Of a stretch of DNA of 64,000 bases, positions 45,704 to 52,339 are shown one piece after another. Numbering within the stretch: the stretch's first letter is position 1; every line of letters starts with the position of its first letter. The stretch lies in sequence record MN453779.2, one strand, 5' to 3'. A program made the translations under genes and the position numbers. Below the pieces are notes generated by a model. The model worked only from the letters and a program-made list of their open reading frames with translations. It ran no database searches and was not told the DNA's origin.

Positions 45704-47581
45704 ATGAGTAGACAACCTACTAACTTTACGCTGCTTGATCCTAAAACGTTTCCAATAGAACTCATGTCACCCGTGACAGTAGCAGATTCGTTTGAAGGTC
45801 AAACCACTAACTTACACGAAGACGGACTCTACTCGACCAGGATCTTTGGTCGAGTAGGTACTGATGAACGAGATAAAACCGAATCTTACATTAATTCCTT
45901 ATTGCCCATTTTCAATCCCACGTATTTTAAAGCATTAGTGCAGTTAAAATCACTTTACTTAGATATAGTAAAGGGTAAGGCATATGCTGTATGGGATGAG
46001 ACAGAACGTGATTTCATAAAATCTAACGTCCTGGAAGGCGATACAGGATTTGCGTTTTTTATGACTCATTTTGGTGAATTAGATCCAAAACCAAATCAGT
46101 CTTTTAAACGAACTCAGAAGATCACTTTGGTTAATAATTTCCGTGATCGAGCTTTGAATAAACACATTCCAGTTATTCCGGCGGGGATCCGAGACATTGA
46201 AATCGGACCTACTGGATTAGTTACTGAAAATGAGATTAACGATCTTTATCGTAAATTGATTTTCCGTACTAAGTCACTGACTACCAAGAACCCTGATCCA
46301 CTTGATCCAGTTTATGATAATATTCACTGGGGAATGCAGGAGTCTTTGAACAACATTGACCAACATCTCTTTGAGTTACAGGAGGGTAAACGAGGTTTCA
46401 TGCAGCGTCGAATGAGCCGACGTTCTATCCACTCTGCAACTCGTAACGTGATCGTCTCTCGTAAAGTCTCTGTAGAGAATATGGATGATAATGTCACTGG
46501 CGATCCTAACTCCACTTTTATTGGGATGTACCAAGCACTACTTGGCTATAACCTAGTTGCTACACACGAACTTCTTAACGGTTTCTTATCTGAAGTATTT
46601 ACTCCTGGTTTGGATAAAGCACGTCTAGTGGAACCTAAGAGTTTAGAGAGTGCTTATGTGGATGTAGATCCCTACACAGTAGATAAGTTTACTTCTGCCG
46701 ATGGAATTGGTAAACTCTTTAATGGGTTTAGTGACCCCAATGTTCGTAACCGTCCTATTAAGGTAGCTGGTCATTACTTAGGTTTACTTTATGACGATGG
46801 TAAAAACGTTTGCTTAGTTCATGATGTAAATGACCTAGGTGAAGGAATGGATAAGAAGTATCTCCATCCTGTTACCTATATGCAATTCTTTTATATCCAG
46901 ACCGTAAAAGCAATTGAAAAGAAGATGTTACAAATTACTCGTTACCCAATTACTGGGATAGGATCCATTGTACCTACACGAGTGTTTGTTCTTCCAACTA
47001 CAGCCACGTCAGAATCAAGAACATTGATTGACATCGATGGTAGTAAGTTGGATAGTTTTCACTTCTTTCCAGTGTGGACTAAAAATCCCAGTTACTTTGA
47101 TGGGATGAGTATTAGTAACGTACGCTTAGCAGCTGCTGGTGGTGACTTCGACGGTATTTCTGTTTGCCGCTTTTAGTAGTAATACTAATCGAATAAGTGC
47201 GGAATAAAGCAAGGAATCTCTCCATTTAGAGATAACTTGAACCGAAGGCTTACTGTAAATGGTAAGTCAGGGGCAGAGCGTAGATAGTGAACCTCTTTCA
47301 TTAAAGAGAATATAATCTATCCAAGAGGCCGCACCATCCTACTGGGATGAAAACGTACGCCGATACCCGGAGCGATCTGGGAGTGAAGATAAAAAACTTC
47401 ACATTAACATTTGGACCAACTATCAGCCAACAGCATTCAAGCTAAAGATTCAGTAGAAGAAATTGAGACTTTGTTTGGTAAACGTATATTCTATATTTCT
47501 GGAGCAGGTGACTTCCTATATGACCCTGTACAGGAACCACACGCGTTCCTTTTACGTTCATTGACCAATGGATTATCGTAA
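45704..47581 (+). CDS. rpoC: Virion RNA polymerase beta-prime catalytic subunit (phiKZ gp180-like); spliced join(45704..47155,47414..47581), 539 aa
   Basis: LHEDGLYSTRIFG, EGKRGF, RYP; catalytic GGDFDG|DQ restored by removing the intron; exon 2 is open to TAA 47579-47581. Confidence 0.92.
47156..47413 (+). mobile_element. Group I intron (258 nt, no ORF) in the DFDGD motif
   Basis: 5-prime exon ends in U, intron ends in G; P1 CGGU/GCCG; P3 GTGCGG 47197/CCGCAC 47329; P7 GCGTA 47278/TACGC 47356; P8, P9 (GCGA loop), P9.1. Confidence 0.92.
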
Positions 47582-50500
47582 TGCAAGAACATCCAGTAAA
47601 CTTTGACGAACTTAGCGGGCTAGAGGGTTTGTTATACTCTCAGTTCGTTAAACTACATGGTACACGAGAACGTGCTAATGATGTAGTGAATCCACGATAT
47701 CAAGTAGTCGGTGATATCATGTTACCTCGTAACAGTCTCATTCATTACCAGGGAAATATTCCTGGTGAATTGGGACCTAGTAACACCGCTGCTTTTATTA
47801 GTAACTATGACAAACGTATTAACATCTTTTTTAATGTTAAGTACGAAACACCTTTGGGAACAACTAAGATTGTTCCTATTCAGTTGACTAAGTTGATCAA
47901 GCAATATGAGGGTGGACATTACCTTTATACCCGTGCTCGTCAATACCAAACTGTAATTCACAAAGAAGGTGAATTACTGGTCAACAACTTAGCCATTGGT
48001 AAGATCCCTGTTCAGTATCGCAGACAAACTGTATTTACCCCATTCCAACGTTCCTATAATGAACTTTACACATTAATGGAGTCAGTGAATGAGTTTAGTC
48101 AATACGATATTCATCAGTTTGTAGAGTTTAAACTTCCACGTTCTTTCCCTTCTTATAAAACGTTAGAACTTAAATTTGAAAAGTATAAACGTTTCTTTAA
48201 TAGTGAAGGTGTTATTGAGAAATACGAGAAGGAAGCTCTAAAAGAATTCCAGGCCGAAGAGTCTTTCTGGCTATTAGATCTATTTGGTATTCTGATTGGT
48301 TTTGAGAATAAACAATACAGTTTGTTTAATCGATTGAATGACCGAGCTAGAAGTCAACTAGAATTGATCTTTAGTTATAACGGTGTGTGTTGGATTGCTA
48401 ATCTTCAAACACTGATCAATTTGATTGGGTACGATGATAAACCAGAAGACACTTCTCCCCGTCCTATTAAGTTTAACTACTTCAAGCGTTTCTACCTTGC
48501 TTTGATTTCTCTGGTGAGTCCGCTTTCTGAAGAAGTTGTGGAAGATAGCTATGACCAACCAGAAGAAACCGCCAAAGAAGAGGTGGTGGCAGATCGATCG
48601 GAAAAAGGAGAGAGAGGATCTGGACGAGAGTCTGAAAACAAGTCCCCTCTGGTACCTAGCACTACTCCTGGCGGCTTGGCTGATCTTTATGCCAGCAGTA
48701 AGGGAACTACTCCTGCGGTGTCTGATACCCCAGGAGCAAAAGGAGAGAAGACTACTGAAGGAACACTTCCTGGGGATTCCGAATCCGAGAATGACCCAGC
48801 ATCAGCTGAAAACTCTGGTAATTCCCCGGAAGAAGAATGGGGTGCGGACATAGACGATAGTGTCTTTGAACGCGCCAGCATCGAACAAGCCACCATAGTT
48901 AACTCTGAAGAAGCTTATTCGCCAGTTAGCACGATCAATCGCATTCTGGAACGTAAGGCAGCCAGGGGACAATTAACAACCAAAGAGAAAGAGTATTACA
49001 CTAACGCAAGTGTTTCTTATTTGGACATTGAGTTTGGTGGTAGACTTCTAGCTGAGATTGTTGATATCAAACCTGAAGACTTGGTGATGAAACCTAAAGC
49101 GTTTGCACCTAAGTCGGAAGCTGTTACAGATGAGTCTGTATTGCGTTCTAGAAGCATGGAACTCACTAATGGATATGTAGAACAATTCCTTGAACGAGAT
49201 ATCATGGGAGCGGTTCTTGCTGTTCAGAACGGCGGCACTGCTTTACTGGATCTAAACCGTGAAACTATTATCACTGCTGATTCCAAGTACGACGTTTACA
49301 AAATGAAACTTCAGCCTGTGGATAACGGCAATCAGTCTACTAGACAGTTCCGTTTACCTAAGGTAGCATCTGACGGTAGTTTTACTATCAACGGGGTTAA
49401 ATCTTACGCTCAGTTGGTCCGTATGGATCTTCCGGTTAGAAAGATCAATCCGGTTAAGGTAGCCATTAGTTCTTATTACGATAAGAAACTGATGATTGAA
49501 CGTTCTGCTTATAAAGTAGACGATTACAATCATTGGCTTAAGACTAATATCATCCAGAAGAGTTATGAAGATAAATCCATTACAGTTAAATTAGGTTCAT
49601 TCAAATCTGAGCTTAAAGAAGTGTGCTGGTATTACTCGGTATTAGCTTCTCGCTTTAAAGAGATTACTGTTGGTGGTTTGGAATTTAACTTTGATACTGA
49701 ATCTATTTTGGTGAAACACCCTAAATGGAAAAAGTATTGTAAAGGTGAAAGCTGGGTCATTGGTGATGAACACGGAGTTCCTGTACTAATCGATAACAGC
49801 GGTTTGGTAATGATCGATGGTGTAGAGAAAGGTTATATCGAAGAGATCCTTCGGTTACCTATGGCTAAAGCTCCAGTCCCTACTGCAACTGCGAACATTA
49901 ACGGATATAAATTCCCTGTAGTGGTGGTTCTTGCTTACTGGATCGGTTTTAGCGAACTAGTGAAACGCCTCAAACCCACTCATCGCGTTGTTGAACCAGG
50001 TACTCGCCCTATGCTTAATGCTAATGAGTATATTGTTCAGTTTGCTGATGAGCGTTTGATTCTTGACCGTCGAGATGGATTGAGTACTTTGATCTTCTCA
50101 GGACTGAGAAAGCTAGATGGTTTAGCAAACTTCTCCAAGGCTCAATTGGATGATCCTAACGTATGGTTCAGCTTGATTAATGATAGTCGTGTTAAACCAT
50201 CTCATTTTAAAGAGATGGATTTGATTTACGATATGTTTATTGATCCCATCACTGCTCGTGAATTGGAACGTCGTGGTTATCCTCTCATTATGGATAAACT
50301 AATCATCCGGGCCGTAGAAATGCTTCTTAACAACGAAGCAGAACACGAAGTAGAGATTGCTGAACAACGTTTGGTTGGTTTCGAGAGATTCCCTGGTCAC
50401 GTCTATCGTGAACTTGTTAAGTCTACCAGGCAGTTTAGGAACAAACCTAATACTGGTAAGAAGACCTTTGACTTAAACCCAGAAGCTATCATGATGAATA

Positions 50501-52339
50501 TCCTGACTGATAGCAGTATGCAACCAGTTGAAGAAGTCAATCCAGTCCATCAACTGAAACAGCAAGAAGAAGTTACGTTTGGCGGGACCTTTGGTCGAAG
50601 TGATCAAGCAATGGTACGTCGCACACGTGGTCAATTACCAAGTTACGCAGGGATCATCTCTGAAGCTGGTAAGGACTCAGGTAAAGTAGGATTTATCTCT
50701 TATCTAACTTCTGATGCCAAGATTGTTGACTATGCTGGTAACGTGGATGTGACCCAAGAAACCACCAATGCAGGTCGTGGTTCTGTAACGGCTAACTTAC
50801 TTTATGGTACAACACGCGATGACAGTAAAAGGTAAACACAGCGTCGACGACTTCGACGTTACTGCCCTTACACTTAGAAATGAGTGTTTGCATTAACCCT
50901 TAATTGCTGGGAAGTACTCAAAGATGCTCTTACCGAAACGGAAACCGAAAGGTTATATGGAAAGGTTTGAAAAGTAGAGCGGAGAGACAGTCAGCAGCGG
51001 AGCGTCTAAGTATATTCGTGATGAATAGATATGACGAGCGTTCAACGACTAGGGGTGAAACTCCCCGTAGCTGGAACAAGGAATGTTCCTACCAAACAGG
51101 GTTACCTTACTGTGTTGCTGAAGAAGCAACTAGACAGTTGGTTGAAATATAGTCTGCTCCTTATAGTGATATAGGGCGGGTGCTAGGTATCGCACCGGGT
51201 CTTAGGATAAGACTGGACATAAGGCGTTGTTCTCAGGTGTTCAGCTAAGTCAATGGATGGCTACTGATAGTTACGTTGCTAACCCTATTAGAACTCCTTC
51301 TGATAGCGTAGTAGCTTATCGTAACTCAGAACTCTATTGTTCTTATGCTAAAGAAGTGGGAACTATTACTGCTATCACTCCTGACGGGATGACTGTTAAG
51401 TATGATAATGGTAGTGAAGAGAAATTCCCACTTGGCTATGAAGTAGGTAAAGGTGCTGGTGAGTATCACAAACATCTTAAAATCACCGATATGAAAGTTG
51501 GTGACAAAGTTGAGAAAGGTGATGTACTTGCTTGGGATGATTGCTTCTACACTCGGGATTTAACCAATCCAAAACGGATTGTTATTAAGCTTGGGACAAT
51601 GGCTCGTATTGCATTGGTAGAAGATCAATTTACCTTTGAGGATTCCATTGGGATTACTCAGAAGTACGCAGATCTTAATACCACGCCATATCTCAAAAAC
51701 AATGAGTTTAGAATAGGTTATGAACAAGCCATTAAACTCTATGTCAAAGTTGGGGATAAGGTAGAATACGATCAAATATTAGCTGATGTGATGGATCCTT
51801 CTTCTGCCATGTTTGAAGAGGAAAGTGTTAATTCCATTGCTGGTTTGGATCGTCTTGGTATTAAACAGATCAAAGCTAAACAAGCTGGTATAATCACTAA
51901 GATCGATGTTATCTATAACGGTGACTTAGATACGGCAGAAGAGTCTTTGAAAACATTCATTCAGGAACAAGATAAGCTACGTGCTAAGAAAGCTAAGTTC
52001 AGAGAACTTGCTGCTACTAATGGGAACGTTGGTGGTAACACATCAGTAGGTAAGTCAAAGGTCTATCCCAATACAGCAGCAGTAACTATTACCATCGAGA
52101 GTAAACTCACCACCACAACTGCTGATAAGTTTGTAGCGGGTAACCAGATGAAAGGTACAGTAGGGTTTATTTACCCAGATCCTATTTATACTGTTGATGG
52201 TCGGGAAGTTGATGTTAAGTTCTCTTTGAAGTCTTTGCTTAACCGAATGGTATTAAGTCTTCGTGATAAACTGGTAGCTAATGAGTTGAACCATGTTTAC
52301 ACTAGTCGTATGATGAAAAAATATGGGAGATATGAATAA
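47581..52339 (+). CDS. rpoB: Virion RNA polymerase beta subunit, large piece (phiKZ gp178-like); spliced join(47581..50833,51225..52339), 1455 aa
   Basis: FTINGVK, NPV, RTRGQLPSYAGII, DSGKVG, RDDSKR|SLFSGVQ, FTFEDSI, DKFVAGNQMKG. Confidence 0.9.
50834..51224 (+). mobile_element. Group IA intron (391 nt, no ORF) in the RNAP beta gene
   Basis: P AATTGCTGGGAA 50902, Q CAGTCAGCAG 50988, R GTTCAACGACTAG 51040, S AAATATAGTC 51145; P3 AACCCT/AGGGTT; U|...G| junction restores the frame. Confidence 0.92.

Follow-up and report, generated by a model that had tools for sequence, protein, structure and literature searches.

The window analysed here, a stretch of 64,000 nt from record MN453779.2, is identical in sequence to the last 64 kb of the genome of Aeromonas phage PS1 (MN032614.2), a jumbo phage of the genus Ferozepurvirus; subtracting 173367 from a position in the PS1 record gives the position in the window. 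It contains a gene for a predicted virion RNA polymerase (RNAP) beta subunit, similar to gp178 of phage phiKZ, that is interrupted by an insert of 391 nt. This insert is very probably a self-splicing group I intron of the IA type within a single beta-subunit gene. The locus consists of three parts:

47581-50833, plus strand: exon 1 of the virion RNAP beta-subunit gene (phiKZ gp178-like); open reading frame (ORF) 47581-50835, 1084 amino acids (aa)
50834-51224, plus strand: putative group I intron, IA-like, without an ORF; 391 nt, recognised by a match to the Rfam model RF00028, an empty site, a homologue in phage CF8, and covariation
51225-52339, plus strand: exon 2 of the beta-subunit gene; its first two bases complete the junction codon, and it includes the FEDS motif region

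An interrupted beta-subunit gene

In GenBank, the coding parts are annotated separately as PS1_0229 (47581-50835, 1084 aa) and PS1_0231 (51227-52339, 370 aa, with a TTG start at 51227), each labelled 'hypothetical protein', and a 43-aa 'hypothetical' PS1_0230 (51021-51152) is placed in the gap between them, inside the ribozyme core described below. Exon 1 matches PHROG 3148 'RNA polymerase beta subunit' over positions 2-1053 of the 1424 in the profile (E = 1.8e-281), and exon 2 matches positions 1056-1422 (E = 5.6e-124), abutting the exon 1 range. As these ranges are contiguous on a single profile, the two exons adjoin each other in the protein. The ORF upstream of the beta gene matches PHROG 2986 (phiKZ gp180-type), and the gene order is that of phiKZ and PhiPA3. 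The PHROG 3148 matches support the assignment of PS1_0229 and PS1_0231 to one predicted virion RNAP beta-subunit gene of the phiKZ gp178 type. Pfam searches with the exon pieces returned no match for exon 1 and only a sub-threshold Rpb2_6 match for exon 2.

Phage AVP1, which belongs to the same genus as PS1, carries the uninterrupted gene. Its nucleotide identity to PS1 is 90-91.5% across 600 nt on either side of the insert, and AVP1_0120 is one unbroken gene of 1455 aa reading ...TTRDDSKR-T-MFSGVQLSQWMATD... (RDDSKR-T-MFSGVQ), so that the two phages differ at this site by an insertion of exactly 391 nt. In PS1, exon 1 ends in ...TTRDDSKR followed by a TAA stop at 50833-50835, and the frame downstream of the insert reads A-LFSGVQLSQWMATD from 51224. 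The last exon 1 base is T50833 (U in the RNA, the first base of the junction codon) and the last intron base is G51224. Joining T50833 to C51225 creates a TCG codon (Ser) and the sequence RDDSKR-S-LFSGVQ in a protein of 1084 + 1 + 370 = 1455 aa, with the predicted ligated-exon sequence ...AAAAGGT/CGTTGTTC... (here and below, a slash marks the insertion or splice site). Exon 1 is collinear with AVP1_0120 residues 1-1084 and exon 2 with residues 1086-1455. The earlier sequence-only reading of this DNA had proposed the same join and a 1455-aa beta subunit, and both the length of the intron-less AVP1 protein and the contiguity of the PHROG 3148 pieces agree with it; alignment with AVP1 places Thr after RDDSKR, where the join predicts Ser for PS1.

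The interrupted motif had been assigned to the conserved block near the active site of bacterial beta subunits. The DD motif of the homologous PhiPA3 and phiKZ proteins is equivalent to D674/D675 of Escherichia coli RpoB (PMC11620839), which upholds this assignment. A phmmer search of the PDB with the full AVP1 protein returned no match, and the C-terminal 506 aa gave weak matches to bacterial RpoB (E about 0.006), whose alignment is loosely consistent with DD being RpoB D674/D675 and too weak to place the motif independently.

Distribution of the insert among relatives

The insert is present in PS1, PS2, and CF8, with the CF8 homologue at the identical site, and absent from AVP1, ACP1, and pAEv1810 (all with about 91% flank identity to PS1) and from ZPAH34, which belongs to the genus of CF8. 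This presence and absence among close relatives is sporadic, as is the case for mobile group I introns. We also surveyed the junction by tblastn with a 201-aa probe from AVP1 that spans it. The probe matched 273 phage records, of which 60 rows were listed, three of them query-related (AVP1, the source of the probe, and one PS2 row) or intron-bearing. Of the 57 non-query rows, 54 contained the junction in one piece, and leaving out AVP1 and the two rows of phage D3's relatives alters nothing. The remaining three rows (PS2, EL, and an EL-like phage) have an extra 390-415 nt. The survey detects inserts of up to about 800 nt, longer ones not being joined into one match. Mismatches between PS1 and AVP1 are approximately three times denser within 10 nt of the junction (AGGT/CGT vs. 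CGCA/CTA) than elsewhere, and GGT/C at the junction is common to all intron-bearing alleles.

Intron architecture and conservation of the fold

For structural comparison, ten introns found by blastn (PS1, CF8, phiKp_32, VB_ZK_P1, FishSpeaker, EL, PhiPA3, PA7, phiKZ, and PS119XW) were aligned with MAFFT; nine of the ten were trimmed to the terminal G at the junction inferred from their exons. Covariation was counted over 96-97 pairs in P2-P9.2, with slid partners and within-column shuffles as controls. The elements of the insert are as follows:

50828-50869, plus strand: P1; exon AAGGU (50829-50833) with guide GCC(C)UU (50864-50869)
50870-50887, plus strand: P2 hairpin; 7 bp, GAAA loop, compensatory changes on both sides in 7/7 pairs across the 10 homologues
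50894-50900, plus strand: 5' strand of P3; pairs with 51098-51104, forming a pseudoknot with P7; compensatory changes in 6/7 pairs
50902-50996, plus strand: P element and P4; P4 pairs 50905-50910 with 50991-50996 (Q element), and the RF00028 alignment puts P4/P5 here
50997-51041, plus strand: P6-P6b-P6a arm; P6b paired in 40/40 cells with 3/4 pairs compensatory, P6a with 5/5 compensatory
51042-51051, plus strand: R element with the P7 5' strand GACUA (51047-51051); position fits the RF00028 consensus
51052-51092, plus strand: P7.1 (51052-51066) and P7.2 (51067-51092); extra hairpins between P7 and the 3' strand of P3, a mark of subgroup IA
51104-51142, plus strand: P8 arm; base of the helix with compensatory changes
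51159-51224, plus strand: P9 (GUGA loop), P9.1, P9.2, and terminal G51224; compensatory changes among PS1, CF8, and phiKp_32

The P, Q, R, and S elements start at 50902, 50990, 51042, and 51145, respectively, and this combination occurs once in the window. P3 is formed by AACCCU (50895-50900) and AGGGUU (51098-51103), for which CF8 has AAUCCU with AGGAUU and PhiPA3 has CUUCUC with GGGAAG. P4 encloses a P5-P5a-P5b-P5c arm (50914-50988), in which P5a and P5c show compensatory changes; P4 itself is paired in 59/60 cells and is so nearly invariant that it is uninformative. Likewise, the P7 pairing with UAGUC at 51150-51154, within the S element (51145-51154), is neither supported nor opposed by variation because it is invariant in all ten homologues. 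In P7.1, 4/4 pairs are compensatory, and P7.2 is clear in PS1 and CF8 and poorly aligned in the distant homologues. The distal part of P8 is restricted to the clade of PS1, CF8, phiKp_32, EL, and FishSpeaker.

Standard pairs occupy 82.6-82.7% of the cells over the counted pairs, compared to 35-42% when the partners are slid by 1-3 columns, and within-column shuffles average 66% with none of 500 reaching the observed value. Compensatory pair types occur in 56 of 96 pairs, and the fraction of paired cells falls only to 78% when PS1 and CF8 are left out and to 73% when the four closest sequences are. Between PS1 and CF8, 18 helix pairs differ, comprising 14 double compensatory changes, three single changes that preserve pairing as wobbles, and one broken pair, and the intron is 82% identical between the two phages, compared to 66-75% in the exon flanks. 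This compensatory pattern reads as a signature of selection on the fold. RNAalifold recovers P2, P5b/c, P6, P6a, P7, P7.1, and the base of P8 unaided.

With a profile of the ten introns, nhmmer finds a single match in the window (E = 8e-91) and none elsewhere in it. RF00028 matches 50836-51176 over the whole length of the model with 35.5 bits (E = 1.6e-7, 461 nt searched). The P, Q, R, and S elements, P3, P7, and a guide beginning at G50864 had all been placed by the sequence-only reading and are present where it put them. Its assignment to group IA also agrees with the P7.1/P7.2 helix set, the covariation among homologues, and an RF00028 score in the range of the T4 td and nrdB introns. The presence of P7.1/P7.2 supports IA as the subgroup.

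The insert has stop codons in all three forward frames, and its longest frame (82 aa, 50904-51152) has no Pfam match and is interrupted by stops in the CF8 homologue. These results bear out the description of the element as ORF-less; the PS1 intron lacks a homing endonuclease gene.

Two further features of the alignment stand apart from the canonical fold. RNAalifold pairs CCC in the guide region (50865-50867) with a conserved GGG (51197-51199) after P9.1 in most of the ten homologues, which could be a chance pairing between two conserved runs or an alternative that competes with P1. In addition, GUAG (51067-51070) after P7.1 is invariant in the ten homologues and its apparent partner in PS1, CUAC, is not conserved, pointing to a tertiary role or one at the junction and not to a helix.

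Guide sequence and predicted splice sites

The 5' splice site of a group I intron lies after a U that is paired to G in P1. In PS1, P1 would place the U50833·G50864 wobble at the cleavage site, followed by GG/CC, one bulged C, and AA/UU, with an additional pair on the intron side (A50834-U50863). The guide had been predicted earlier from a short GGU/GCC pairing; the guide stands, and the helix is longer than proposed, with 5 bp around a bulged C plus the intron-side pair. The exon and guide sequences vary together among the homologues. The guide GCC accompanies exons ending in GGU/ in PS1, CF8, and phiKp_32, and the exon ACGGU of phiKp_32 with its guide GCC(C)GU is a compensatory change relative to the P1 extension of PS1. 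The guide GUC accompanies exons ending in GAU/ in EL, PhiPA3, 201phi2-1, and probably FishSpeaker. PA7 has the guide GUCUCC with the exon GGAGAU/, and its P1 is a perfect 6-bp helix of these two sequences; PA7 has no P2. At the 3' end, the homologous introns terminate in G at the junctions inferred from their exons, as PS1 does with G51224.

Two joins only keep the reading frame, namely U50833/G51224, which yields Ser, and G50832/G51223, which yields Ala and lacks a U at position -1. The residue at the junction varies among relatives (Thr in AVP1, Val in PhiPA3, Ile in 201phi2-1, and Ala in EL), and because of this variability homology cannot decide it. Under the canonical rule, the predicted residue is Ser. 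The slight uncertainty that had been attached to the junction is thus justified to the extent that the Ala-giving join is also in frame.

Splicing would follow established group I chemistry. The pre-mRNA would fold into a P1-P9 core, in which an exogenous guanosine bound in P7 would attack the phosphate after U50833, held by the guide (50864-50869) through the U·G wobble. The free 3' OH of U50833 would then attack after the terminal G51224, and ligation of the exons would give a single 1455-aa protein reading ...RDDSKR-S-LFSGVQ....

Active intron or relic

Several observations weigh against an active intron spliced at these positions. The RF00028 score is below the gathering score of 50 bits, and no group I match appeared in a scan of the whole window with Rfam at the gathering threshold or in an 8-kb scan at E <= 10. 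The minimum free energy (MFE) fold is not unusually stable (z = -1.68). P1 is short and requires a bulged C, and in PS1 we see no convincing P10 beside the guide, that of phiKp_32 being 3 bp. The reading frame is also kept when the join is shifted one base upstream to G50832/G51223, which yields Ala. According to their annotations, jumbo phages have RNAP beta and beta' subunits that are naturally split at several places. None of the predicted phiKZ introns was seen to be spliced in a transcriptome analysed by long reads, under the conditions of that study (PMC10914365); among them is the gp179 intron, a member of the ribozyme family of PS1. Splicing in PS1 itself is something that we infer from sequence. 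The scores can be put into perspective, since the proven T4 introns td (40.3 bits) and nrdB (35.7 bits) also lie below 50 and the homologues from phiKZ (92.2), PA7 (74.8), PhiPA3 (67.8), and phiKp_32 (51.9) all exceed it. The wider Rfam scans missed the element because of their filters, the match appearing when only the 461 nt are searched, and the MFE fold is uninformative and shows no group I topology because a single-sequence MFE structure cannot represent the pseudoknot.

The natural splits and the phiKZ transcriptome also speak for the most serious rival, a dead intron relic that is no longer spliced, in which case the beta subunit would be made as polypeptides of 1084 and 370 aa that assemble non-covalently, like other RNAP subunits of jumbo phages. 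The GenBank annotation of two ORFs, the second with a TTG start at 51227, would fit such an arrangement. However, the only Shine-Dalgarno-like sequence, AAGG, ends 2 nt before this TTG, and the break lies inside a conserved motif that is continuous in 54 of the 57 non-query rows of the junction survey (60 listed of 273 records). The fold has been kept since PS1 and CF8 diverged, with 14 double compensatory changes against one broken pair, and the intron is more conserved between them than the flanking coding sequence. Moreover, no damage is seen in U(-1), in the terminal G, or in any core element. We therefore regard a relic as improbable, and the PS1 intron is probably active in splicing.

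Splicing one base upstream, after G50832 and after G51223, would produce a protein of the same length reading RDDSKR-A-LFSGVQ. EL has Ala at this place (DD-VKR-A-VF), and the GG before the 3' junction is kept in PS1, CF8, and phiKp_32, so that both joins are always possible. In contrast, only U50833 pairs with G50864 in register with GG/CC, as the U·G rule for group I introns demands, and the residue is not conserved among AVP1, PhiPA3, and 201phi2-1; the shifted junction appears even less likely than a relic. An intervening element of another kind, i.e. an intein, a translational bypass element, or a group II intron, would share with the observations the interruption of a conserved gene and nothing more, and its probability is close to negligible. 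An intein is excluded by the stop at the junction (50833-50835) and the stops in all three forward frames. The gap bypassed in T4 is roughly 50 nt, and 391 nt is far longer. The helices and the model match are those of a group I intron, not of group II.

Other putative introns in PS1

A second insert, of 258 nt, lies at 47156-47413 in the upstream gp180-type (beta'-like) gene and, by comparison with AVP1, splits the catalytic motif DFDG/D. It is present in CF8 and absent in AVP1. We found no similarity between this insert and the intron at 50834-51224 by blastn or by nhmmer with the ten-intron profile, and RF00028 has no match in 47130-47470, all of which accords with the earlier suggestion that the two introns arose independently. 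The annotated gene PS1_0228 (47411-47581) is really the 3' exon of PS1_0227. In the PS1 genome, blastn finds three places that resemble the intron at 50834-51224, only one of them in the window. The part of the genome outside the window (MN032614.2 1-173367) thus probably has two further introns of this family, which by analogy with AVP1 and ZPAH34 are likely to reside in non-virion RNAP genes.

Implications for annotation and intron biology

On this interpretation, PS1_0229, PS1_0230, and PS1_0231, all 'hypothetical proteins', would be replaced by one 1455-aa beta gene with an intron. The GenBank calls of PS1_0228, PS1_0230, and the start of PS1_0231 are artefactual because the introns went unrecognised. 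CF8, phiKp_32, and VB_ZK_P1 need a corresponding revision, as probably do FishSpeaker and EL. The PS1 intron had not been annotated in GenBank and reveals no new kind of element, its type being already known in related jumbo phages. What is new here is modest: the site is shifted with a matching change of the guide, and one site is occupied by forms that have and forms that lack an endonuclease gene. A literature search that covered publications other than the PS1 genome paper (Rai et al. 2020, Arch Virol) found no mention of introns in PS1, PS2, or CF8, so an earlier description is possible.

The DD motif, a hotspot whose intron endonuclease has proved to be a mediator of competition in co-infections of jumbo phages, thereby gains a second site of insertion, 10 nt away from that published. 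The endonuclease-plus and endonuclease-minus forms at the same site would suit studies of intron gain, loss, and retargeting in phages.

Comparison with related introns and known systems

The closest core sequences outside the Aeromonas phages are those of Klebsiella phage phiKp_32 and Raoultella phage VB_ZK_P1 (71-73% identity). Their introns occupy the identical site (DDPKR + U/) and share the GCC guide, but they differ from PS1 in that the P1 loop, which separates the 5' splice site from the guide, contains a 350-aa HNH_3/NUMOD1 ORF matching PHROG 59 'HNH endonuclease' (E = 2.8e-26). At the position of this endonuclease, the P1 loop of PS1 holds a small hairpin of 20 nt (50842-50847/50852-57) and CF8 has a different hairpin of 32 nt. 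The introns of phiKp_32 (399-1832 of the stretch compared) and VB_ZK_P1 are unannotated, and in the records their upstream beta ORF runs on into the intron.

Two other phages carry ORF-less introns of this family in the beta gene. In EL (520-934 of the stretch compared), the intron splits gp186/gp187 right after DD (HDD/VKR). In the Shewanella phage FishSpeaker (about 1391-1731 of the stretch compared), the exons could join in frame as DD/PKRTSF or DDQH/RTSF, of which the conserved GUC guide favours the first. The beta' site NADFDGD/ is occupied by the same ribozyme family in PA7, phiKZ (the gp179 intron), and PS119XW. In phiKZ, the stretch between the intron core and gp178 (1738-1925 of the stretch compared) encodes the C-terminal exon of gp180.

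The tree of the intron cores places PS1/CF8 and phiKp_32/VB_ZK_P1 in one clade, which nests with FishSpeaker and EL, and groups PhiPA3 with the beta' NADFDGD-site introns of phiKZ, PA7, and PS119XW. On this tree, the family has moved between sites more than once, the direction and mechanism of which we infer. The lineage of the PS1 intron includes a form whose P1 loop bears an HNH/NUMOD1 endonuclease, at the PS1 site in phiKp_32, and, 10 nt upstream and right after DD, the introns of EL and probably FishSpeaker, with the more distant introns of PhiPA3 and 201phi2-1 also at this upstream site.

As a speculative scenario that we consider rather unlikely, the introns of PS1, CF8, and phiKp_32 might be an offshoot of the DD-site introns, in which a one-base change of the guide from GUC to GCC retargeted the intron from GAU/ to GGU/, 10 nt downstream. 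Occupation of the new site would, in addition, break up the sequence recognised by a DD-site HNH endonuclease of the PhiPA3 gp210 type. The ORF-less intron of PS1 could then be maintained in competition between phages as an allele that confers resistance, and could be mobilised in trans by endonucleases of the phiKp_32 type. In this scenario, the presence of the GAU-guided family also at NADFDGD/ in beta' (phiKZ, PA7) would point to hopping between the two catalytic-centre motifs by reverse splicing.

The published intron of PhiPA3 lies in the same gene, and its gp210 is encoded within this mobile group I intron, which interrupts the catalytic-centre motif of an essential virion RNAP (Birkholz et al. 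2024, PMC11620839). It shares with PS1 the DD hotspot and the broad ribozyme family (P/Q/R/S, P7.1). Unlike the PS1 intron, it carries an active HNH nicking homing endonuclease, gp210, in its 5' part. Its insertion site, NDD/MKR, which we confirmed from sequence, is 10 nt upstream of the PS1 site at DD-S-K-R + 1 nt.

Evidence for splicing at this hotspot comes from Pseudomonas phage 201phi2-1, whose gp273/274 coding sequence is joined in GenBank on the basis of mass spectrometry and for which spliced reads have been reported (PMC11512511). Like the PS1 intron, the gp273/274 intron is ORF-less, of about 335 nt, located in the DD motif region of a gp178-family gene, and built on a related core; a query with the PhiPA3 core matches it at 83% over part of its length. 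Its site directly after DD (HDD/MKR; ...GAU/, guide GUC) is 10 nt upstream of that of PS1 (...AGGU/, guide GCC), its P5 arm is much reduced, and its P8/P9 periphery is different.

The classical td and nrdB introns of T4 resemble the PS1 intron as IA introns with extra hairpins between P7 and the 3' strand of P3, in their insertion into a conserved enzyme motif of a phage protein gene, and in their range of RF00028 scores. They differ in their host genes and in having endonuclease ORFs (I-TevI, I-TevIII) in other loops, and their similarity to PS1 is limited to the core elements.

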